Positions 41,626 to 64,000 of a stretch of 64,000 nucleotides of DNA are shown piece after piece. The position numbers and the translations under genes are program-made. The DNA comes from Monocercomonoides exilis PA203 (lineage: Eukaryota; Protista; Preaxostyla), in the NCBI GenBank assembly GCA_001643675.2, contig LSRY02000029.1, positions 186,001 to 250,000 of the forward strand. The letters run 5' to 3'. The stretch's first letter is position 1. Every line of letters begins with the position of its first letter. The notes beneath the pieces were generated by a model. The model did no database searches. It saw only the letters and a list, made by a program, of their open reading frames with translations, and was not told the DNA's origin.

Positions 41626-44600
41626 ATGCGAAAAGCTAAAACTGCTTCAGTTTCAAATTTAGAAGCAGGTAAGTACTGGGAAGGAATCGACCTCAGTTTA
41701 TATGCAGTGTCTTCCGTTGTGAGAATTCATTTGAGTAATTTTATGGCGTATGACGAGCAAATTTTCTTTCCTGGACCAAAACTGAATGTCATTCTCGGAC
41801 CAAATGGATCTGGAAAATCTACGCTTCTTTGTGCGTTAACACTTGGATTAGGAGGAGGACCTCAAGATCTTCCGCGTCAAAAGAATATCAGTGAGTTCAT
41901 TAGGAACGGAGAACAACGTGAACCTGAAGAACCTCACAGAAAACATCGAAAATTGGATCGTGCCAAAGGAAGGATATCTGACACGCAACAGGAATCTGCA
42001 GAAAGCGATGAATACGATGATGATCAAAATGATCGTGAAATTTTATATGCAACTATTGATGTTTCAATTGTTGTTCCAACTCGTGAAAGCAAAAAAGGAG
42101 TTTTGACAATATCCCGCACTTTTGACAGTAAAGATCGCTCAACATGGAAGGTCAACGGCAAAAAAGCGACAGAAAAGATGATCCATCAGATCGTATCGAG
42201 CCTCCAGATTTTCCCAAATCGCTTAACTCAGTTTCTTCCGCAAGAACGAATCTCCGCATTAGCAGCAATGGACCCCACACGCCTTCTCCAGGAGACGCAG
42301 CCGTCTCTTCTGTGCCCTGAATCCCTCGAGGCGTACCGGATGCTGCTTGAAGGCGGCGGAAGGCGGGCAGACTGGAAAGTGAAAGTGGGAGCAGCGAACA
42401 GAAGGCTGGACACGCTGATCAAAATGAACGAGGCGATTTTGCCTGCAGTAGAGCGCTATCGCCAGGCAGAAGAGCGGCGCGTGCGGATTTCCTATCTCGA
42501 AAAGAAGCGGCTGTGGCTCGTGTATGCGGAGAAGCGGGCAGCAACCAAAGAGAAATTGAGGGAAGTGAAGGAGGCAGAGCAAGAACTGGCAAACCAGCAG
42601 GCGAAAGACCTGACACCTGCGCTGGATGCTGTGAAGAAAGCGAAGGAGAACACAGTCAGAATCGAAAAGCAGCTGAACGAGATGCGACAGAACTTGGGAA
42701 AACTAGCGCGAAAGAGCGAGACAGCGCGAAATAAAGCAGAGGCAGCACGGGCAAAGCAGAAGGATGCGATTGAAGAGGAGGAAGAGAGGACAGACGGGAT
42801 CAAAAGAAGGAGGGCGAACATCGAGCGACTGCGGGCGCGTCTGAAGGAAGAAGAGGAGAAGGCAGCAAAAGCAGCGCAGAGCAGAAGAGAGCTGGACGAG
42901 CAGATTGAGCAAAGCCAAAGAGAAAGTGCCAAAGTGACAGAGGAGCTGCGGCAGGTGCAGAGAGAGAGGGGGACAGCACTGACGTCACTGGCACGGATGC
43001 AGGCACAGCTGCGTGAGCTGGACGAATGGAGCGACTCTGAAGCGAACAGGAGAAGAGATCTGTTAGAAAGGTTTCAGCAGAAGTTTCGAGATCTCCCCAA
43101 AATCGCAGAGATTGTGCAGAGAAACGAGAGAGCGTTCCAGACAGAGCTACTGGGGCCCATTGCGTCGGAGATGGTGGTGAGAGAGGAGCAGCGCAGAGAG
43201 CTGACGTTTGATGGGTCGACGGGGCGGCACTTCCACTCTGATGAATATGGAAGAGAAACAGAGGCAGGTGATGGCTTTGAACAGAGGAGGAGGAGCAGAT
43301 TCGATGGGCATGGCGATGGAGGCAGAAGTGATGTTGTGGCTGGAAGCTTTCTGCACCGCTTCTACACAGAACACATTGTCGGGGTGAATGTGATGCGGTC
43401 GTTTGTCTCGCAGTCGAAGGAGGACGAGGACAGGTTTCATGAGCTGCTGAAGCGCTACGACTTGAAAGGATCGTCGATGAAGCTGTCAGCAGAAGCAACT
43501 CATTCGCTTGAAGAGAACGATGTGAAGCAGGCGCCTGGCTCGCCCCAGCTTCCGTCTTCTTATAGACAGCATATGTCATCGCAACTATCGTCGTCATTAT
43601 CATCTTCTTCTTCCCCTTCTTCTTCTCCATCAGCTCCAATCAACCCCATCCTCCCCAAAATCACCACAACTGAAGCCCTGAATCTTCCCCAAGATGACAT
43701 CGACTACAATTCCATCTATGCCTCTCTGTCTGAGCTCATCGCATGCCCAGCCCCCGTCCGGCGTGTTCTTGACGAGTCTGTGCGAATCCCACTAGTAGCA
43801 GTGGCATCAGAGAATTTCCATAAGACATCTGATTCCTTCTTCAATGATCCTGAGAAATCAAACATTCGAGTGTGCACGCCATCGCGTGTTTTCACCTCAA
43901 AAAGATCGAAATATGACAGAGAGAATGTGGTGGTTACAGCAGAGTATACACGCAAGCCGAACTTCCTCGTTCCGCAGGAGTGGCCGGAGGCTCAGGCGAT
44001 TCCAGTGGCTGTGCAGAAGGCGTATGAGATTGTGGTTTCATTGGAAAGAGAAAAAGAGAAAGAAAGAGAGAAAGAAAGACAAAGAGAAGAATCAGTTCGA
44101 GAAGCTTCTTTGAGAGGAAGGAGGACAGTGAAGAATGAGGCAGACGATGAATTGACACAAATGCCACCTGAGCCGCTCAGAGCAGACAGAGATGGAGATT
44201 CAGAAAGAGGCAGCGATCATCTTTCTTCTTCTTCTTCTTCTTCTTCCAGACAATCAGAACAAACGCATTCATCTAATTCATCTGATTCATCTGTGACACA
44301 TTTCACACCCGAACAGCTAATGACAAGGTCCATCCAGAAGCAGATAGTGATGAAGGCGAAGGTGTATATGCAGCAGCAGCTAAAGGAAGTGCGTGAGCTG
44401 ATCACAAAGATCGATCGCAACTTATCAAGTCTGCGAAAGAGCGAAGACGGAATCACAGCAAAGATGACAGCCATTGCGAACGAGAAGCGACAGATCCAAA
44501 GGTTTGCGGCGCTGCCACGCAACACACAGAGAGAGTTGGCAGCTTTAGAGGCACAAGAAGAGGATGAAGAAGTAGCAGCGTTGAAGGAAGCGAAGAAGGC

Positions 44601-46175
44601 GAATGTGATTATCAGGCCGAAGGAGGAAGAAGGAGACAGAGCAGAAAAAGCAGACAAAGCAACAAAAGCAGATGGAGAGGATGTTCTGACACAGCAGTTT
44701 GGTGAGGATGGGCTGAGTCCGAATAGAAGAGGAGGAAGAGGAGGAGGAGGAGGAGGCACGCAAAGAGAACTGCCATTTGCACCGAAAGAAGCGAAGGTGT
44801 TTGCAACCGGGTTCGACTTTCTTGTCTACAAAGCGCAGGCATCGATTGAGCGGCTGGCGAAGATAGCAGAGCAGCTGGAGAAAGAGTACAAGGCATCGCA
44901 GGACGAACTGAACTTAGCGCGAAACGAGATCACTGCGAAGCAGAATGAGCTGGAGGACGAGAAGTATGTGATCAAGCAGAAGGAAGAAGAAGTTATGCAG
45001 ATTCAGCAGGCGATCAGGGAAGTGAAAGGGAGGCTGGAGAGGGCGAGGCAGGAGCATGCGAATGCAGAGAAAGAGGCAGCAGAGGCAGGAGAAAGAGCAG
45101 AAGAGGCTGCACCACACACAGACGCGACGATTGTGGAGGTGTTTAAGACGCTGCCGAAGACGCTGCCGACACTCGATGCAGAGCTGGACGAGCTCAGAGG
45201 GGCAGCAGAGATGCAGGCAGAGGACAGGCAGGCAGCAGCGAAGGAGCAAGAGTACCTGAGGAGGGAGAAGGAAATAGAAGAGCAGAAGCAGCTTGTGGAA
45301 GAGACGAGCCGGCAGATGATGGCAGAGCAGGCGAAAGCGAAGGAGCTGAAGGAGATTTGGCTGCGGCCGCTGTCGAAGGCGGTGGAGGTGCTGTCGGCGC
45401 TGTTTGAGGAGAACATGAAGTTTGTGGAGCAGAGAGGAGGAGTGAAGATTGGGACGCTGGGGAGAGACGGGAATGTGGAGGAGTTGCTGCTGGGGAAGGA
45501 AAAGAGGAAGGACGGGGAAGAGAAGACGAGGGAGAAAGGAGAGGAGAAAGGGGAGGGTTCACAGGAAGGGAGCAAAAGGAGTGAAAATGAGAAGAAAAGA
45601 AAGAGGAAGAAGAAAGGTGATGGTGATGATGATGATGAAAGTGATGATGAATATGAAAGTGATAGTGGGAGCGACTACGAAGAGGAAGAAAGGAGGAAGA
45701 GGCAGCAGCAAAGACAAGCAAGAAGTGCGTCTTCATCATCATCATCTTCTTCTTCTTCTTCTTCCTCTTCGTTCGATTTCTCCGACGACATAGAGATCGA
45801 AAAAGTGGGTCTTGTCATATGCGTTTCATTTCTGCCTTCTCAGAGCATTCCCCTGCAGCCCCTCTGCCTGGGCAAGCAGTCAGGTGGAGAGAAATCTGTG
45901 TCGTTGATGCTGTTTCTGTTGGCATTGCAGAGAGTGCCAGCGATTATGCAGACAGAATGGAAGGAGCTGGAGAAGCAGATAAAGAGGCAGATGGAGGAGT
46001 TCAAGCAAAATGAGGTGAAAACGGAGGTGGAGAAGAAGAGGAGCCAGGAAAATGGGAAAGAGAAGGAGAAGGAGAAAGAGAAAGAGAAAGAGAAAGAGAA
46101 AGAGAAAGAGAAAGAGAGGAGTAGAGGAGGAAGAAAAAGAGGAAACAATTATGATAGCGATGATGACAGCAGCAG

Positions 46176-46206
<31 letters not shown>

Positions 46207-48312
46207 GCACTGAGCCCAACAGAATCCGACGGGCTTGCCGGGAAATCCCGCCGTTCAAGGACAATTGATCTATCCAACTACGATTTTGCATCAGTCATTT
46301 CCCTCCGCCCGCAGCTGAAACCCAGTCCGTTCCGAGTGGTGGATGAGATCAACCAAGGGATGGATGAGCACAACGAGCGAAAAGTGCTGGAGTTGCTGTT
46401 CCATTCGTCCGAGCAGCCGATGAGCCCGCAGATATTCGTCATCACGCCAAAGCTGCTTAAAGAGCTGAGCTTCACAAAGCACACTCGTGTTATTATGCCC
46501 TTCGACGGGCCGTTTATGTGCACGCAGGCAGAAATGCATGCACATGTGCAGAATTTGATGAAGCTGGCGATTCTGAAAGTGGCTCAGTTGGAAAACGCAA
46601 AAAGGAGATTGGAGAAGGAAAAAGTGAAAGTGAAAGAGGAAGAGGAAGAAGAAGAAGAAGAAGAAGAAAGTATTGCTATTTCTGATGCTCGAAGTCAAAA
46701 GCATCCAAAAAGCAAAGAAACAGAAAGAACAATCAAAAATAACGAGGCAGATTCTGCTGCTTCTCTCTCTCTCATCAGACATCTTTCACAACTCTCTTCA
46801 ACCAAAATGCCAAACTCACAAAAGTCCAAACGACGTTCTGTTTCTTCTCCTCTCCCTCCTCTTCCTCTTCTTCCTCCTCTTCCTCCAAACGTGGCGTATG
46901 CTGCCACTTTAGCGCCTTCCACACAGCTGAGCGTGTTGGAGGCTGCCCAGGAATGCACAAGCATTTTGAATGACTTTTCTAGTTTGACTTCTGCTTCAGT
47001 GAAAGACGAAAAAAATAATCTAAGTGATAACTTGGAAGTGACAGCGAGTCAGGTTCCAGAACCACTGATGAATAAGACTTCATCGTTTTCTTCTTCTTCC
47101 TCTTCCTCCTCTTCCTCTTCTTCTTCCTCTTCCCAGTCAAGTCAGAAGAATACTCAACAAACAGGCAATTCACAGAAATCTGGTGCGAATAAAACGCATG
47201 CGAAACCCGAAGAGCACCTTTTGAGTGCTGTTTCACAATATTTGAACTCTCTGACTCAATATGTGGCACAGACACAGCGATTGGATGTTACTTCTGGAAA
47301 TGAAAGTCTGACTGATTTGACTTCATCTTCATCATCATCATCTGCTTCTTCTTCCTCTTCAGCTTCTTCTTCCTCTTCTTCCTCTTCTCTTCTTTCATTT
47401 TCTCAACAACAAAGCAAAAACGAGCACAAAAGCGCATCTTTGCTCAGCTCAAACTCATTTCAATCAAACACTTCACAGCTTCCCTCAGCAATTGACTTAT
47501 CAATTTTCTCTTCGCCCGCCGTTTCTTCTTCGAATCAGTCGCGTCCTCCTTCTTTTGCACACACAAAACACGTCAACCCTCTCTTCCCCATCGCTCCTCT
47601 CAAGCACATGTACAGCCAGCCACTTCAGCGTTCTCTTTCAATCACTTCTTCGTCTTCTCCTTCTTCTTCTTCTTTGTCTTCATCATCTTCTTCGTCTTCT
47701 TCCTCACCATCTCTTTCTCCTTCTGCTTCTTTGTCAACAACAACTTCATCATCATCTTCTTCTTCTCCTTTCCCTTCTCCTTCTCCTTCTCCTTCTTCCT
47801 CTTCAATCACACCATCCCAGCCACAATATTCACCTTCTCACAGCATCTTCACTTCTGAAGTGCCCACTCCACTTTCCACTTCTTTTGCCTCTCTTTCTGC
47901 TAATCCTCGGAGAGCATTGAGAAAGCGACCAAGACCTTTTTCAAGCGATGAAGAAGAAGATGAAGAAGAAGATGATGGAGGAAAAGAAGAAGAAAATGGT
48001 GATGATGATGATGATTACGAAGCAGAAGCAGGAGAAAGAGCAGTTTCACACAGAAACAAAAAGAAAAAACTGAGAAATAACGAAGGTGCAAAGAGCCACA
48101 AAACCAGAATTTCCTCTGAAGATACCGAAGATGCCGAAGATGCAGAGAATGATGTGTTTCCCAGCCAATCGCAAGGCTTTGGAATAACCACGTCGCAGTG
48201 GACTTCGCAGAAACGTCTGCGCAGGCCGAGCGCAGCAGCGCGGGACAGCCAGAATTATTTCTTTGATTCGCAGAACGATGAGTCAAATGCAAGCGATGAG
48301 GAATTTTTGTAG
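41626..48312 (+). CDS. SMC5: Structural maintenance of chromosomes protein 5, expanded to 2228 aa
   Basis: Walker A GPNGSGKS followed by LGLGG; Q-loop QFLPQER; signature QSGGEKSVS; Walker B PFRVVDEINQGMD; QIFVITPKLL; long coiled coils. Confidence 0.92.
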
Positions 48313-54922: not shown

Positions 54923-57900
54923 AATAAAATAAAATAAAATAAAATAAAATAAAATAAAATAAAATATATATATAGAGAGAGAAATCCAAGTGTTTGAGAA
55001 ATTCAATTAAAATAGAAGAAAGAAGAAAGAAAAGAAAAGAAAAGGATAATTTTTTAAAGCTAAAAAAAAGAGAGTGAAAGCATCAATAAGTCAAACTCGA
55101 TAACTGTCCCTCTGTTTTCTGCAAGTGCATCTTCATAAGCGTCTTTGACATCCAAAAGAATGGGGGCAAAATGAGGCAGAAGCTGTCTTATTGACTCCAA
55201 CACTCCACGATAAATCTGAATAGAAACAGAAATTCATTTAAAAAAAAATTGGGAAATATAAAAAAAAATTTCAATGAAATTATAACATTTAATAAATTTG
55301 AAAAAGAATTTGAAAATTTTTAGATAAAAAGAAAAGAAAAGAAAAGAAAAAAAAAAGAAAAGAAAAGAAAAAAGAAAATTAATTTTAAACAATAAGAAAA
55401 AGAAAATAAAAAGAAAGAAAGAAAAAACTCATTCACATAAGTCCAACCTGCAGTTTTGCCGATGTTCCTCCTTTCTTCCCTTTCTCAAGCCCCAGTTTCT
55501 TCAGCTTCTCCTTCGTGCCCACCTCCAGCTGCAGAACAGGATTGCGAAATCCCTTTTTGTCTGTGAATCCTGTCAGAGGCACAAATGGAGGCTGCTTCCA
55601 AGGAAGATCAGATGATAAAGGAGATGTCGGCTGCGAATGCGATTGGAGAGGAGAAGAAGAGGAAGAAGAAGAAGAAGAGGAGGAGGAAGAAGAAGAAACC
55701 GAAGACTTCGGCCTCACGGGAGACAGATGTGTGTCTACCTTCACCGGCACATCCGGTGACGTCGTCTCTCTTCTGTGCTTCCTCCGAAAGCGCTCGATTT
55801 CTCTGTCTGCCGAGCGCAGCACCACTTCCGGCTCAAAGTGCATCACCGCCGGTCCGCTTTGCCGCACCTGCGCTTGAATCTTCTGTGCATCCCCAACAAT
55901 CGCCCGGATCGCCCTTTCTTTCTCTGGTGAGACAGAGGTGTGGAAGGAAGGAGAGGGAAGGCTGGGTGAAGAAGATGGGGAAAGCACGGAGAAACTGGGG
56001 GAGTCCGCGCGGGTTTGGGCGAGGTTCAGAGGGGAGGAAGCTGACATCGAAGAAGAATTTACATTTGAAGAAGAAGAAGAAGATGATGATGACGACGACG
56101 ACGACGATGAGAGCGATGAAGGCGATGTGAAAGAAGGCGAATGAAATTCAATGTTTCTGCTCTCCGCTTTCTTCCTTTCGCTGCCCTGTTCTCTCAAAAA
56201 GCTCTGCCCACGCGGCGAGTGGCCAGCCGACAGATGTGCTTCAGCCTCATTCCAGAGAGTGATCATCGTCTGATCAAACATTCCACTTTCAGCATCAGCC
56301 GACAGCAGTCCCGCCGCAGCCATCGCATTCAGCTCCGCCGGCGCTGTCTTCATCGCCAGACGCGTTTCAGAGAAAGGCGAATCATCATTCGGTGTGGTTG
56401 TCTTTGTCTCAAAGAAGGATGATGTGTTTTGCGTGGTGTACTTCCACGTCCCTTTCTCCTTCTCCCTCAGATGCTTCGTGAGCTCTCGCTCCTTCTGGAT
56501 CCGCCTCTTCTCCTGCTCCATCCTTTCTTTATCTGCCAGCCTTGCTGCCTTCTCCTCTTCTGTCTCATCCGGCTCGTCCTCATCCTCATCCTCAATGTCC
56601 AAGCAGCTCGCTTCTCCCTCTGCGCCCGCCTGCTGCATCTGCATGTGCCTCGTCATCACTTCCTCCAGCTCGCTTTCGCTGGCTGCCCCGCGCGGCGACG
56701 CATTCGGCGCTTGAAACCCGTCACGCCTCGACTGCAGCCCCGAAGAAGCGCCGGACTCTGTGAAGGACCCATTCACACGGAGCGAAAGAGGAGAGATGAT
56801 CCCGGGGCTCATCAGCGAGATCGCCTCCAGGGTCGGTGCTGCTGGCTGGCTGGCTTCCAAATTGCGGCTTGATGATAACGCTGATGACGATGAAGTTGAT
56901 GCCGATGATGCTGATGAAGCAGTTAATGTTGAAGATGATGTTGCTTGTGTCTTTGACAGCTGTGAATTGCTCGTCTCCCCTTCTCCAATTGTGCTGAGCT
57001 CCAAAAAGGACTTCGAATTCTTTCTGCTTTCAAAGCTTGATTTGGGATCAGCGCTGTCTCCCATTGGAGTGGGAGGAGGAGGCGTCAATGTGTTTCTGAA
57101 CAGGGTTGCTCCAATGTTTGTGTGTTCAGACGCATTCCGGTCTTTTGTGTGGGTGTGATATGATGAAGCAGCAGAGGCCAGAGATGCCGTGGAGGCAAAA
57201 GCTGAGCTTGCTGCTGATGTTAGTGTTGATGCTGTTGTTGTGTAAGAAGCAGTCGACGCTGACGACGCATGCCGCGAATGTTGGCACAAATAAGGCTCGT
57301 CCTGGTGGAGCGAGCGTTCCGAATAGAGCGGAGAGGAAAGCGGAGTGAAAGCAGAACTCAGAATTGGAGAAGGCGCAGCAGAGGAGGAGATAGAAAAGGA
57401 AGGAGAGGGCGTTTCACAGACGGTTGAGGAAAGCGACACAGCTGTTCTGTCTGTTTGCATTGGCGATGCCTGCAGTGAGTGAGATGGATCCTGGGGAGAA
57501 GGATGAAACAAGGTTGTGGAAGAAGAAGGAGGAGGAGGCTGCTGAGGTGAAGAATAAGGATAAGAAGAGGAAGAAGCATCAGCAGAATCACGATTGTTAT
57601 TCAGTCCAGCCTGTGGTTGTGCTACAAAGTCAGCCACTTGCTGCAGCGCTGCTGTCTTCGAGTTGTAGAGATTTTGGTTGTTTGTCAGTCCTTTCACACC
57701 CCAGCGCCGTTCTGTGTCTCTTTTGCGGTCTTCATCGCTCATCGGGACGCACAAAAGGCCCCCTTCCTCTTCTAGCTCGAGCTGAGGGAATATTCCTGTT
57801 TCCCACAGTGAGTCGCCTTCTGTGATGCGCTTCATGATCGAGACAGGGTTGATTGGAGACACTGCAAAAACAGAGGAGAATTGTGAGCGGTGTCTTTCGA

Positions 57901-58755
57901 ACTCCTCCTGGCGCTTCTTGGCCATCACCTTGGAGGGCACTACGACTTTGGGGATGTGGCGGGAGCGGGCCGTTGGTGACTGAGAAAGAATAGATTTTTT
58001 GGTGGTGTTTTGTGGAGATGAAATGGCGGAAGTGGTATGAGATGAATTTTGGTCAATGTTGTGAAGTGTGCTTGATAATCTGTGTTGTGACGGACTTTTG
58101 CGCTGCAAGGAAGATGAAGTGCGAGATTGTTGAGGGCGAAGCGGTGAAATGGATTGCGGATCGTTAAACCCTGAAAATGCCAAATTTCTTTTTCAAATAG
58201 TTTTAAATTTGTACAGTCACAAAATACAACTTTGAAGTTTTTTAAAAAAAAATAAGTATCAACCTCTTTTCTAGGGATGTTGCTGGCCTTTGTCTCGACT
58301 GTGTATGACTGTAGCTTCGAGCGCCTGGCGTTCGATGATGGTGAACAAAGGCGGGAAATCCAGTTAGATATGTTCGAGTTGGAGAATCTGGGAGCTGAGT
58401 GGGACTGCAAGTGGAGTTTTGTCCTCCATATTTTTTGTCACGTTTTTCTTCAACAGACAAAGTTTTTAATGCAGCTTCAACATGCTCAGAAGCAATATCA
58501 TTAATCTGCGCAGAACGTTCTGGATCAATTGAGGATACGCATTCTGTTCCTGCTATCTTTTAAGAAATGAATTTTAAAAATACGAGATATCTCATTAAGC
58601 ATACTATACGCAAAGGTAAATGACCATTTTGTTCTGTTTAAGAAGAAATAAAAACTATTTAAGAACAAATTATTGAGTGAAATACTTTTAAACAATGGTG
58701 ATGCTTCCTCTTTTAAAAGAAAAGCGTAAGGCTTATGCGAAGGTGCAGAAGCCAT
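54643..58755 (-). CDS. Ser-rich protein with a C-terminal TSNAXIP1_N-like domain and coiled coil
   Basis: Exons 58755-58686, (58633-58584 uncertain), ~58556-58264, 58187-55448, 55215-55097, 54856-54643; spliced QLEVGTKEKL...KLQIYRGVLESIRQLLPHFAPILLDVKDAYEDAL resembles TSNAXIP1/C6orf118. Confidence 0.6.
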
Positions 58756-58937: not shown

Positions 58938-61900
58938 ATGATTCCTCATGCGTGCGACAGTTGCAGGAAAAAGTATGAACTCAAATTTTGTTGTTTGTTA
59001 GATATACAAAATAATTGTCTTTTGCCTAAACTCACAGAAAAATAAAATGCGATGGGTGTGACATTAATTTTTTATTCTCTATAATAAAAAATTTTTTCTT
59101 GTAGCAATTCTCCATGCTATAATTGCGTTTCTAGGGGGTTGGAATGTACCTATAAATTACCAACAAAAAAGAGAGGGGGATCAAATAGAAGTTTGTAAAA
59201 AATTTATGATTTCTCTTCAAAGAATAATTTATTTGCTTCTTCATTTCGTAGCTATCCCTGTTAAAGTCGCAGCTCATTCTCGGGCCAAGAGTTCTTTACC
59301 TCCATTTGTTGTTCCTCCTGTGGCAAAGCCATTTGTGGTGAATCCAATTGTTTTTCCTCAAATTCCAACACCTTTTCATCATTCATCTTCGTTACCGCCA
59401 CCTCCAACACCTTTGAAATCAACTAATGCACCTTTTTCTGTAGTTGGATTTCCAGTTCTCCCGCCGCAAACTGTTTTTGCAAAAGAAACAAATCAGTTGA
59501 AGCCTTTTCCTCTTTCCGCTCCTTCATCCATTCAACAAAATGCTCCTTCGACAAATAAACCACTCGTAACGTTTTCATCTTCCTCCAATGATGCAAATCA
59601 AGCTTCTCCTGTGAAGATCCAATCATTATCAAAATTTGTTACATCCAGCACTTCGACTTCAATGCCATTCCCTTCTTCACCACCAAAGGATACTCCATCT
59701 GAAACAAAAAGCTCGAAGAACACAGAGGAACAAAAACAGGTTGAAGTCAGATTCAATGGAATAGACTTTGACAAAGTGAAGGTCAAAGGCAAAGGCACTT
59801 CCAAAGGAAAAAGTCCAGGGAAAGGCAAAGGGAAAGGGAAAGGTAGTGCTTCATCAGTTCATTATGGACACGGCAAGTCATCCCACCCGCACATTCTCTC
59901 GATGGTCCCTCTCCAGCCGTACCCGCAGCCGCCCACTGGCTTTTCGCGGATGAACATCCCGTTTCTGGCGATTGGGCCGAACAAGCTGCTTTACCTGGAG
60001 ATCTATCGGAGATATGTCAATCCATATGTCAATTTCCACGGAGGCGATATTTCCTTCTTTGCTGTATTTCCGTTTAACCCGGTGGAGGTTCTGCTGCAGC
60101 TGAAGCGCAAGAAGAGAGAGAAAGCACGCTTGAAACATCGTTCTTCAACTTTAAAAGAATCTTCTTCTTCGTCATCATCATCCTCCTCCTCCTCATCATC
60201 TTCTTCTTCTTCTTCCTCCTCCTCCTCATCATCATCATCATCTGCTTCTTCTCCCTCTTCCTCCTCCTCTTCTTCCTCCTCCTATTACGAAGCACACACC
60301 TCCTTCACCCGGATGGAGCATCTTGTCCTGCACTATCTGGATGCACTGCATGTGCAGTTTTACACCATCATCGCCATTGCCGCTGCTATGATCGAGCACA
60401 ACCACACGGCTGCTGTGAGCATCCGGCAGGCCCGAATGATTGCAGCTGTGCTGGGCGATGTGACAGGAAACATTCGCGATAAGAAGAAGAACCTGATTGA
60501 CAAAGTGGGTGCGACAATGTCGGTGATACGCGATATCTCAGCGGCGGTGGTGGAGAAGTTGGACAAGGCGGTGACTGCAGGAGAATTGAAGACGAAGCAG
60601 GAAGAGGAGCAGAAAAGAAAGGAGGAGAAGGGAAAGGAAGAGAAAGGAGAAGCGGAAATCAAAAAGCAGGATACTGATTGCTTGGAGAGTTTTAGGGGAA
60701 GCAAATCAGCAGAAGTTTCTGATGTTTCAAAGAAATCGTCCACTCCAAATGATTCCTTGAATGCAAATGCTTCTTCTCAAAGTATCAAAGTCAAAGTCAG
60801 TGACACAAACATTGACTCCTCCAAAAGCACTGCCAAAGACACAGCCAACAGCACTGCCTCTCAGCAGTCATCCAGCAGCCGTGTACGCTTGCAGCTATTC
60901 AAAGGGATTGTGATGCACCCTGTTCTCTATTCTCTCCTTTCTTCATTTCTGAACTGCTACTGCATCGCAAACAACATGGCGCCCACGCCGTGCGAGCTGA
61001 TGGAGGACTGCTTTGTGATTGAGTATCTGCGCGGTATGCTGCTCCTCTCCTGCTTCTTTGTGGGGAGGCAGCACCGCCGTAGCGCCTTGATGATGAAGCA
61101 CACATTAGAGCAGTTCGAGCACACATCCACACTCGACCTCTTCTTCTCTGAGTACAGCCCGTTCCACCACATCACGCTGCATCCGGAGATCAACATGTGC
61201 AGAACCAACGCGGAGAGTATGATGCAGTCCATGCGGACGCTTTCCACTGCCCTCCGTCAATTCGCACACTCGCAGCTTTCAGGCACGCAGCCACCAAACC
61301 CTTCTGCCTTTTTTGAGCAAAAACATCAACACAAAGAAGACAATCTGCTGGCAGACGAAGAGTCGATTGGCCGGATCTTCGGTGCGATTGGTGAGTGCAT
61401 CCAGGCAGAGTCTGATCCGCAGCTGAAGGAGACCATCCAGCTGAAGAAGTACCGCTCTGTACAGACTCCCTTACGCATCTTTGCGAAGACTGACTCTGCT
61501 TTAAGGATCCTCCATCACATCTACCGCAATCTGGTGATGTTCCGGTGTCCGAAATGCTTTGCGACAAAGGATTTGAAGGAGAAGTACATAAAAGCTTCTT
61601 GTGGCTTTTCTTCTTCTTCCTATTCTTCCTCTTCATCTTCTCCAACTACCCCAAAATCCAAGCCAGTGATGATCTTCCACACGACCATCGCAAGCCGTGC
61701 ATGCTCTCCCTTGTTTGCCACAAAAGTGGACACAAACATACTCCGCCCACTGCTTAGCACTTACATGCAGACACTTGAATACCCATTACGCACATTCTAC
61801 GCAGACATCTTCCGCATTACTGTTCCTGAAAGGGAGCGGCTTTTAGAAGAGGTTGAGGAAGAGACAATGAAAGAGGCAGGTAAGAATAGAAATGGAAGTG

Positions 61901-64000
61901 GAAGTGGAAGCGAAAGTGAAAGTTTCAATGATTGCAGAAGCAGAAGCAATTCAAATGACAGCAATCTTAACAATGACAATGAGGACAATAAAAGCAGCAG
62001 CGCCAGCGTCTTATTTGACAGCAGCTGCAGAGGCAGCTGCAACCGCTCTATCTCCCAATCTTTCTGCCAGAACACGTCAGCGCTGCTAATGATAGCCGAG
62101 GCGGCGTCTGTCTCGTCCATCATCCGCTCGCTCAAAGAGAACATCAGCCACAAGGAGTTCCAGGACTATGCGACATTTGTGGCGCAGGGCATTGGCTCGA
62201 CCGAAGCGTCAAGGCCTCATTCAACACAATATTCTATGAGTGATGCAAGCAACTCGACAACAGCAACAACAACAATTGAACAATCAAAGAAAACAGAAGG
62301 TAGTTCTAATGCAACATCAACTTCTTCTTCTTCTTCTTCTTCTTCTTCTGAACAATTCTCGGCACAGGAAATCAGCCCACAACGCCCTCTCCGCACGTGG
62401 CTTTCCATGTTTGTGTCCACCGTAGAGATGAAGGGGAGTGCTTTGAAAGCTGTTCTTTCCGGCTCGTTCTCTGAAATCTCCCCGACTCGCATCGTATCTC
62501 CGCAGCAGGCGCTGTTTGAGAAGATGATTGTGTTTGTGCACAGGCTGACGACGACCACACCGAAAAAAATGAAAGAGTACATCACAACACTCCTATTGGC
62601 CAATTTTGTCGCGAACAACATTTCTTCTCACTGTGACATTGCATCTCAGACTTCCCTGCTGAAACAGCTGAAACATCTGACTCCAACAAAGACACATGCG
62701 GCTGATCCGAGCAAGTTTGAGCTGGAGTCAACGCTTGCCTCGCTGGATGCAGCAGACATCACACACTCCTTCGCCTGCAGCCCCACTGGCAGCCTTTCCA
62801 TCCGTACGTATCTCTCCTTGCACAGCACAATGTTCCTGGTTACAGCTCTCTTCCCTGTCTCGTTCTTCATCATGCGCCCGTTCTCGAAAGCAGACTTCTT
62901 CCCGTTCCACTGCACCCCCTTTCCTGCGGAGCATCTGCATGCGGTTGTGCGCTCGTTGAACACCACGTTTGGGCTGCTGATTGCAGCTGGCGCGCAAACA
63001 CTGGAGCCAATTCTGACGCTGCACGAAGTATCAAGGGTGAATCGTGATCCGTTTGTTACGTGTGCAATCTCGGATTTTGGAAGGCGTTGCGACAATTTGC
63101 AAGAAAAGGCGGTGAACGAATCGAATGATGAAACAGAAAACAAAGCCAATGATGATGGTAAGCAAAAGGATGATTCTGTTCCATCGACCCATCCGTCTAC
63201 AGCAAGTGCAACGTCACCACTAACAATTTCGCAAACGCAGGAACTTCCAAAAACTGCATCATCAAATCCATTTTTGGACTTTATTCCTCCTCGCCCCACG
63301 CAATATTTCCCAGCATCATCTGAGTCGTCAGCAAATCCCAATGAAAACACCAAAAACACTTTGTCTTGCTGGTTTCTCGATCTGTCAAAGATCCATCCAG
63401 ATCTCTTTTCTGAGCAGAAAGCGCGCGAAACACTGTGCGAAATGGCGAAGAAACGAGGAAATTTCGTGTGCAAATGCGGAGAAGAGCTGACACACAACAA
63501 AAATGTGGATTTGACCTGTCTTCTGTCGACAATCATTCCTCCACCGTTCATCCAATTTGGGACAAAACAGACGCAAGATATCGAAAGCCCACTGAACAAG
63601 ACGAGTTTTTTTGATCTGAGCAAGGCAAAACAAGAGCACTGGACTCCTAACGCTGCTACGCCACTGGACATGGTGAATGCTATTGTGCATCCTTCGCTTT
63701 CGTCGCTTGTGTGTCAGAGAGAAAAAAGCAATGGAAAAGAAAAAGACACTCAAAACGGATCGAATGCAGCAAAGGAAAGAAACAAGAACAGCGACAGACA
63801 GAAGAGAGACGACGGAGTGCAGTTCCCAACGATGCTCCGTTTTCCTCTCCAGTTCCTCCACAATGTTGTGCGGTTTGTGCAAGAAAACCCATTCGATCCT
63901 TCCTCTTCCTCTTCCTCTTCCTCCTCAGCATTTGCATCTGCATCTTCAACAACATCAGCTCAGCCTCCTTCAACATCAAATGAGATTAATTTTTTGTCCT
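58938..64000 (+). CDS. Zn(II)2Cys6 (GAL4-type) binuclear-cluster transcription factor, runs off the window
   Basis: Exons 58938-58972, 59038-59055, 59105-59190, 59252->64000 give [42 protein letters not shown]; the exon 4 frame appears open to the window end, which explains its absence from the ORF track. Confidence 0.9.

Follow-up and report, generated by a model that had tools for sequence, protein, structure and literature searches.

Does the oxymonad Monocercomonoides exilis PA203 encode a transcription regulator of the Gal4 type, with a zinc cluster so finely divided among exons that gene prediction passes it by? The question is raised by a window of 64,000 nucleotides (contig LSRY02000029.1, positions 186,001 to 250,000), which is the whole stretch of DNA analysed here and in which a gene on the forward strand begins at position 58938 and runs off the end. 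The original prediction, made from the letters of this window, proposed a complete GAL4-like sensor factor in a metamonad-like host, its six cluster cysteines spread over micro-exons. We find that this is an intact, expressed nuclear gene, and that it is one of eight such genes in the genome. Its product is probably a sequence-specific zinc-cluster regulator of transcription, belonging to a family of oxymonad proteins.

Direct reading of the DNA gives the three proposed GT-AG introns, the exons of 35, 18 and 86 nt that they separate, and a giant fourth exon, as follows (window coordinates):

58938..58972, + strand: exon 1 (35 nt, read by eye), with the ATG, the C-x2-C pair (Cys1, Cys2) and the first part of the basic stretch; phase 2 at its end
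58973..59037, + strand: intron 1 (65 nt, GT..AG, phase 2)
59038..59055, + strand: exon 2, an 18-nt micro-exon (likewise read by eye) encoding K-I-K-C-D-G, with Cys3
59056..59104, + strand: intron 2 (49 nt, GT..AG, phase 2)
59105..59190, + strand: exon 3 (86 nt), Pro-Cys4-x2-Cys5-x6-Cys6 and the K-K-R-G linker
59191..59251, + strand: intron 3 (61 nt, GT..AG, phase 1)
59252..64000 and on for 2,906 nt past the window, + strand: exon 4, the first 4,749 of about 7,655 nt (7,652 coding plus the stop)

The expected in-frame continuation into an exon of more than 1,500 codons is also present. From 59254 no stop interrupts the frame for 1,582 codons, up to the end of the window, and 967 further codons follow in the next 10 kb of the contig before a stop 2,904-2,906 nt past the window; the whole coding sequence is 7,791 nt, or 2,597 codons. 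Retention of intron 2 or intron 3 brings an in-frame stop. The ATG at 58938 is the sole methionine in the open frame upstream, and the N-terminus that it opens, M-I-P-H-A-C-D, is shared with the paralog on contig C10.

When codons are read across the three junctions, the six cysteines are distributed 2+1+3 and spaced C-x2-C-x6-C-x5-C-x2-C-x6-C, followed by K-K-R-G, which is the GAL4-type pattern that had been claimed. The interval between Cys2 and Cys3 is basic (R-K-K-K-I-K), and the S-P-C at Cys4 places a proline before this cysteine; the roles of both features in Gal4 are known from structure 1D66. The first 46 residues are thus predicted to be a canonical Zn(II)2Cys6 binuclear cluster of the Pfam family Zn_clus (PF00172). 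Exon 3 alone scores 22.9 bits against this family over profile positions 17-39, where the gathering cut-off is 21 bits, and a six-frame PF00172 search of the genome also matches there. In the family member of the oxymonad Streblomastix strix, where exons 2 and 3 are unsplit, the score rises to 76.5 bits over profile positions 1-38, and among solved structures the Gal4 DNA-binding domain comes nearest (E 6.5e-08).

The split cluster recurs. In the 82.3 Mb and 101 contigs of the published long-read M. exilis assembly (PMC8767320), we found eight loci of one layout, the window gene and seven paralogs on contigs C8, C10, C11, C23, C28, C36 and C46. The six-frame PF00172 search returned seven matches, six of which share one split point, beginning at profile position 15 or 16; two more loci came from a degenerate exon-2 pattern. 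The seventh six-frame match was rejected as a false positive, being GC-rich and having neither the cysteine pattern nor introns. The exon-2 pattern matched eight times, each time in a zinc-cluster locus, and three times in a reversed control. Since eight loci share the layout and the pattern gave eight matches against three in the control, the arrangement is beyond chance.

The eight loci agree down to the reading phase. Exon 1, which also has homologues in Blattamonas and Streblomastix, always has an ATG and a C-x2-C pair, and its last codon is broken off in phase 2. The length of exon 2 is 18 nt throughout; it encodes K/R-x-K/R-C-D/N-G and likewise ends in phase 2, and its differences among loci are partly synonymous (TGC/TGT, GAT/GAC). 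Exon 3 begins one base ahead of x-x-P-C-x2-C-x6-C. The introns are 49-112 nt long and bounded by GT..AG, and the cysteine spacing of the window gene, read piece by piece, is found in all seven paralogs. The last exon spans about 2,200 to more than 3,180 codons, cut in the C36 copy by one extra short intron.

Intron 1 has the same position and phase in all eight M. exilis loci, in Blattamonas and in Streblomastix. In Blattamonas nauphoetae BLNAU_19003 (JARBJD010000238.1), an 18-nt exon encoding K-I-K-C-S-G, with AG before it and GT after it, sits inside the annotated first intron. The place and phase of intron 1 are unchanged in Streblomastix strix, whereas intron 2 is absent and exons 2 and 3 are fused, so the exon 2/3 junction that we infer in M. 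exilis is written there in continuous DNA. The micro-exon structure of the original prediction is thus, on comparative reading, kept in eight M. exilis loci and two other genera, and the search for paralogs across the genome has added seven loci to the one from which it started. Two features of the Streblomastix sequence deserve separate mention. On contig SNRW01001006.1 an in-frame TAA lies inside the zinc cluster and appears as Q in the deposited protein; a non-canonical genetic code has been reported for Streblomastix, and TAA read as Q fits it. The deposited model of 556 residues contains the cluster and the first conserved block twice, at positions 12 and 277 and in identical form, which may reflect a tandem duplication, or else fusion or misassembly in the model.

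RNA evidence comes from one metatranscriptome study, four of whose runs, labelled 'synthetic metagenome', contain the gene. Contigs of two runs (X1 and X4) show the joint 59190|59252, and in a third (X2) a 13-nt loose end matches the end of exon 3. RNA contigs from the four runs give no coverage of intron 3 or of the upstream intergenic DNA. Between 59252 and 61400 they follow the genome without rearrangement, apart from low-complexity repeats such as the poly-serine spacer described below, which was skipped as a repeat. With the joint seen in two runs and the intron uncovered, intron 3 is supported by RNA; the assignment of introns 1 and 2 is comparative.

Beyond the cluster, the protein and its paralogs share six collinear conserved blocks, A-F, between which lie variable low-complexity spacers. 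The parts mapped in the window are:

59941..60114, + strand: block A, holding Y-L-E-I-Y-R-R-Y, 43-60% identical to most paralogs and Blattamonas
60153..60292, + strand: poly-serine low-complexity spacer between blocks A and B, of a length that varies among paralogs
60292..60567, + strand: block B, holding F-Y-T-I-I-A-I-A-A-A-M
60958..61263, + strand: block C
62737..63027, + strand: block D, also present in the C10 paralog; C10, C11, C23 and others are linked by the homologous segment
63463..63600, + strand: block E

We define an oxymonad giant zinc-cluster family by a cluster on three micro-exons followed by a giant exon with blocks A-F, and on its predicted exons and blocks the window gene is a member. 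When modelled with AlphaFold, at moderate confidence, blocks A-C (pLDDT 67.8) and block F (pLDDT 67.1) come out helical. A Pfam search of the long exons found no other family in the window gene, the seven paralogs, seven Blattamonas proteins or the Streblomastix protein. Among 1.84 billion representative proteins, a 405-position profile of blocks A-C gave 22 matches, of which all the named ones are from M. exilis, Blattamonas or Streblomastix and the others are metagenome fragments. The extreme C-termini of most family members are acidic (D/E) and rich in bulky F, L and W. Fungal acidic activation domains have this composition, D/E plus F/L/W.

Do the helical blocks then complete a fungal architecture? 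The original prediction had likened two motifs to the fungal middle-homology region. Both motifs are where they were said to be, in blocks A and B, but the resemblance fails every sequence test. By Pfam, neither PF04082 nor PF11951 was found at E up to 1-10 in the window gene, the seven paralogs, the seven Blattamonas proteins or the Streblomastix protein; a PF04082 search was the test that the original prediction had named. No fungal protein is among the 22 matches to the profile of blocks A-C. An hhalign comparison with a fungal PF04082 factor and its 20-sequence ortholog alignment, covering one fungal orthogroup, gave a probability of at most 0.2, and for blocks A-C nothing meaningful came from Foldseek against the PDB, from an Atlas structure search or from a PDB sequence-profile search. 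Other, weak hints point towards such a fold. By language-model features, 29 of the 30 named clusters nearest to a compact Blattamonas segment carry PF04082; the same search with the window gene's own blocks gave no usable match, probably because of their long serine spacers. Weak fold hints for the helical blocks lead to the ligand-binding domain of Upc2 (4n9n, 7vpr) and to Cep3 (6f07, 6p7v). We put the chance that the blocks adopt a diverged middle-homology fold at about even, and membership of that family is not established. The bolder proposal, that blocks A-F are a highly diverged Upc2/Cep3-like domain and that oxymonads therefore carry the whole 'fungal-specific' architecture of cluster, ligand-responsive helices and acidic activator, we consider a serious but somewhat doubtful possibility. 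If true, the whole factor class would either predate Fungi or have moved whole into an anaerobic gut flagellate lineage and grown into giant proteins. Of the complete GAL4-like sensor factor, then, the zinc cluster is secured by PF00172 and a middle-homology region is not found by sequence; with no sequence match, and weak fold and language-model hints, the complete sensor stays a hypothesis.

How would such a protein work? In the mechanism that we favour, the six cysteines would bind two zinc ions, and a short GC-containing half-site would be read, as in Gal4, by the basic residues that lie between Cys2 and Cys3. The helical blocks A-F, with their low-complexity spacers, would form a regulatory or interaction module, and the acidic-hydrophobic C-terminal tail would recruit the transcription machinery. 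Several points weigh against a regulator of this kind. Profile, PDB sequence-profile and hhalign searches gave the helical module no relative of known function at the level of sequence. Beyond the cluster the chain is proline-rich and shows no evident coiled coil for dimerisation, so a Gal4-style dimer mode is not implied. The RNA contigs reach back only to 59134, leaving introns 1 and 2 without RNA support, and the 'synthetic metagenome' runs could be simulated from annotation rather than be real RNA. Of the three junctions, RNA bears out that of intron 3, by the joint seen in two runs, and stops short of the other two.

This last point would also fit a protein in which exons 1 and 2 are unused and translation starts downstream, so that the cluster would be cut short and non-functional or missing altogether; the annotations of three M. 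exilis paralogs, which truncate or lack the cluster, might suggest this. However, both exons, their phases, the start codon and the six cysteines are kept in eight loci, some of whose differences are synonymous; the 18-nt exon is kept in Blattamonas, and exons 2 and 3 are fused in Streblomastix; and exon 3 of the window gene has no in-frame ATG. We regard this alternative as very improbable. A genuine zinc cluster could also serve something other than a gene-specific factor, as in Cep3, the Zn2Cys6 subunit of the yeast CBF3 kinetochore complex, or in a chromatin or scaffold protein, and the fold hints above include Cep3 itself; we judge this explanation unlikely, though less so than unused exons. 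A sequence-specific regulator remains the reading that we prefer.

The domain is usually quoted as fungal, and contamination of the assembly by a fungus is an obvious concern to which we now give next to no weight. The contig that carries the gene is 1,213,020 bp long and belongs to the decontaminated M. exilis assembly; the seven paralogs, each on another large contig (0.69-2.3 Mb), bear M. exilis names in NCBI and EukProt. The introns of the gene are short and AT-rich, as is typical of the M. exilis genome, and its named relatives were found in oxymonads only. Contamination is therefore excluded, and the metamonad-like host that had been suspected from the DNA is M. exilis.

Where the gene came from is a separate matter, since either transfer from a fungus into an oxymonad ancestor or descent from an early eukaryotic zinc-cluster gene is compatible with regulator function. 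In favour of transfer, a Sordariomycete factor with PF00172 and PF04082 has a cluster 57% identical to that of Streblomastix; it was one of two candidates returned by a word-index search with the Streblomastix cluster, and such a search is a poor guide to the closest kin. No other named lineage turned up with the family in the profile search, and by language-model features blocks A-C have fungal PF04082 clusters as their neighbours. Transfer has also been put forward to account for the patchy distribution of the domain outside Fungi (PMC5611559). Yet outside the cluster the protein does not resemble fungal factors in sequence, and a domain of 40 residues cannot resolve a donor. Furthermore, introns within the domain are common to three genera, so any transfer must be old. 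On balance transfer seems to us rather unlikely.

If the cluster is so well conserved, why was it not seen? We inspected five models that should carry it (MONOS_13268, MONOS_7235, MONOS_12918, BLNAU_19003 and BLNAU_2708; the window gene's own model is not among them), and all five truncate, lack, skip or read through the cluster exons, much as had been anticipated for a gene easily missed by predictors. The three M. exilis models, MONOS_12918, MONOS_13268 and MONOS_7235, begin within exon 3 or lack the cluster and need new 5' ends. The BLNAU_19003 model omits the 18-nt exon with the third cysteine, and that of BLNAU_2708 reads through intron 1. Most of the inspected M. exilis, Blattamonas and Streblomastix models miss the domain owing to the 18-nt exon and its neighbours, and transcription-factor censuses of these genomes therefore probably undercount zinc clusters. 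Two relatives have been flagged by automatic naming: in UniRef, Streblomastix strix KAA6398214.1 and Blattamonas BLNAU_19003 are each called 'Zn(2)-C6 fungal-type domain-containing protein'. Our literature search found no paper on oxymonad zinc-cluster proteins, or on Zn2Cys6 together with Monocercomonoides or Naegleria, and the term 'transcription factor' is absent from the M. exilis assembly paper (PMC8767320).

Zn2Cys6 proteins outside Fungi are already documented, in Naegleria gruberi (71), Ectocarpus (24), Capsaspora (7), Fonticula (2), dictyostelids and diatoms (Scazzocchio 2014, PMC5611559). That review does not mention metamonads, notes that the non-fungal proteins have architectures unlike the fungal one, and states their ancient or transferred origin as open (PMC5611559). 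What is new here is an oxymonad family with relatives found only in oxymonads (Blattamonas, Streblomastix) and among metagenome fragments. The family places a canonical Zn2Cys6 domain in Metamonada, a supergroup absent from the review (PMC5611559), although automatic names already flag two oxymonad proteins. It supplies eight candidate regulators for a model amitochondriate eukaryote, and its shared intron positions are a data point on whether 'fungal' zinc-cluster factors are ancient or were spread by transfer. It also shows a regulator class to be under-annotated in oxymonads, where a conserved 18-nt exon defeats gene predictors.

Two neighbours of the gene can be described briefly. On the reverse strand at 55433-58183 there is a 916-codon open frame, GC-rich (about 53% G+C) and without a Pfam family, which is the divergent neighbour of the zinc-cluster gene and lies about 750 nt from its start. 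Two genes upstream of the zinc-cluster gene, at 41626-48312 on the forward strand, a 2,228-codon open frame has an N-terminal AAA_23 / Rad50-SMC-like P-loop (Pfam 69.5 bits).

Among known systems, the M. exilis protein is most readily compared with the fungal Zn(II)2Cys6 factors Gal4, Put3, Hap1 and Ppr1 (PF00172). It shares with them the spacing of the six cysteines, the basic stretch between Cys2 and Cys3, the proline before Cys4, the N-terminal placement of the cluster, the K/R-R-G linker after Cys6 and an acidic-hydrophobic C-terminus. Unlike these factors, which have about 600-1,000 residues, it has about 2,600, lacks PF04082 and PF11951 by sequence as well as an evident coiled coil after the cluster, splits its cluster over exons of 35, 18 and 86 nt, and belongs to a metamonad. 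Its relatives in the databases include KAA6398214.1 and BLNAU_19003, which form one family with it and share both the cluster and blocks A-C. With the non-fungal zinc-cluster proteins, compared here as the review describes them (PMC5611559), it has in common a canonical cluster, a lineage outside Fungi and an architecture that is not the fungal one.

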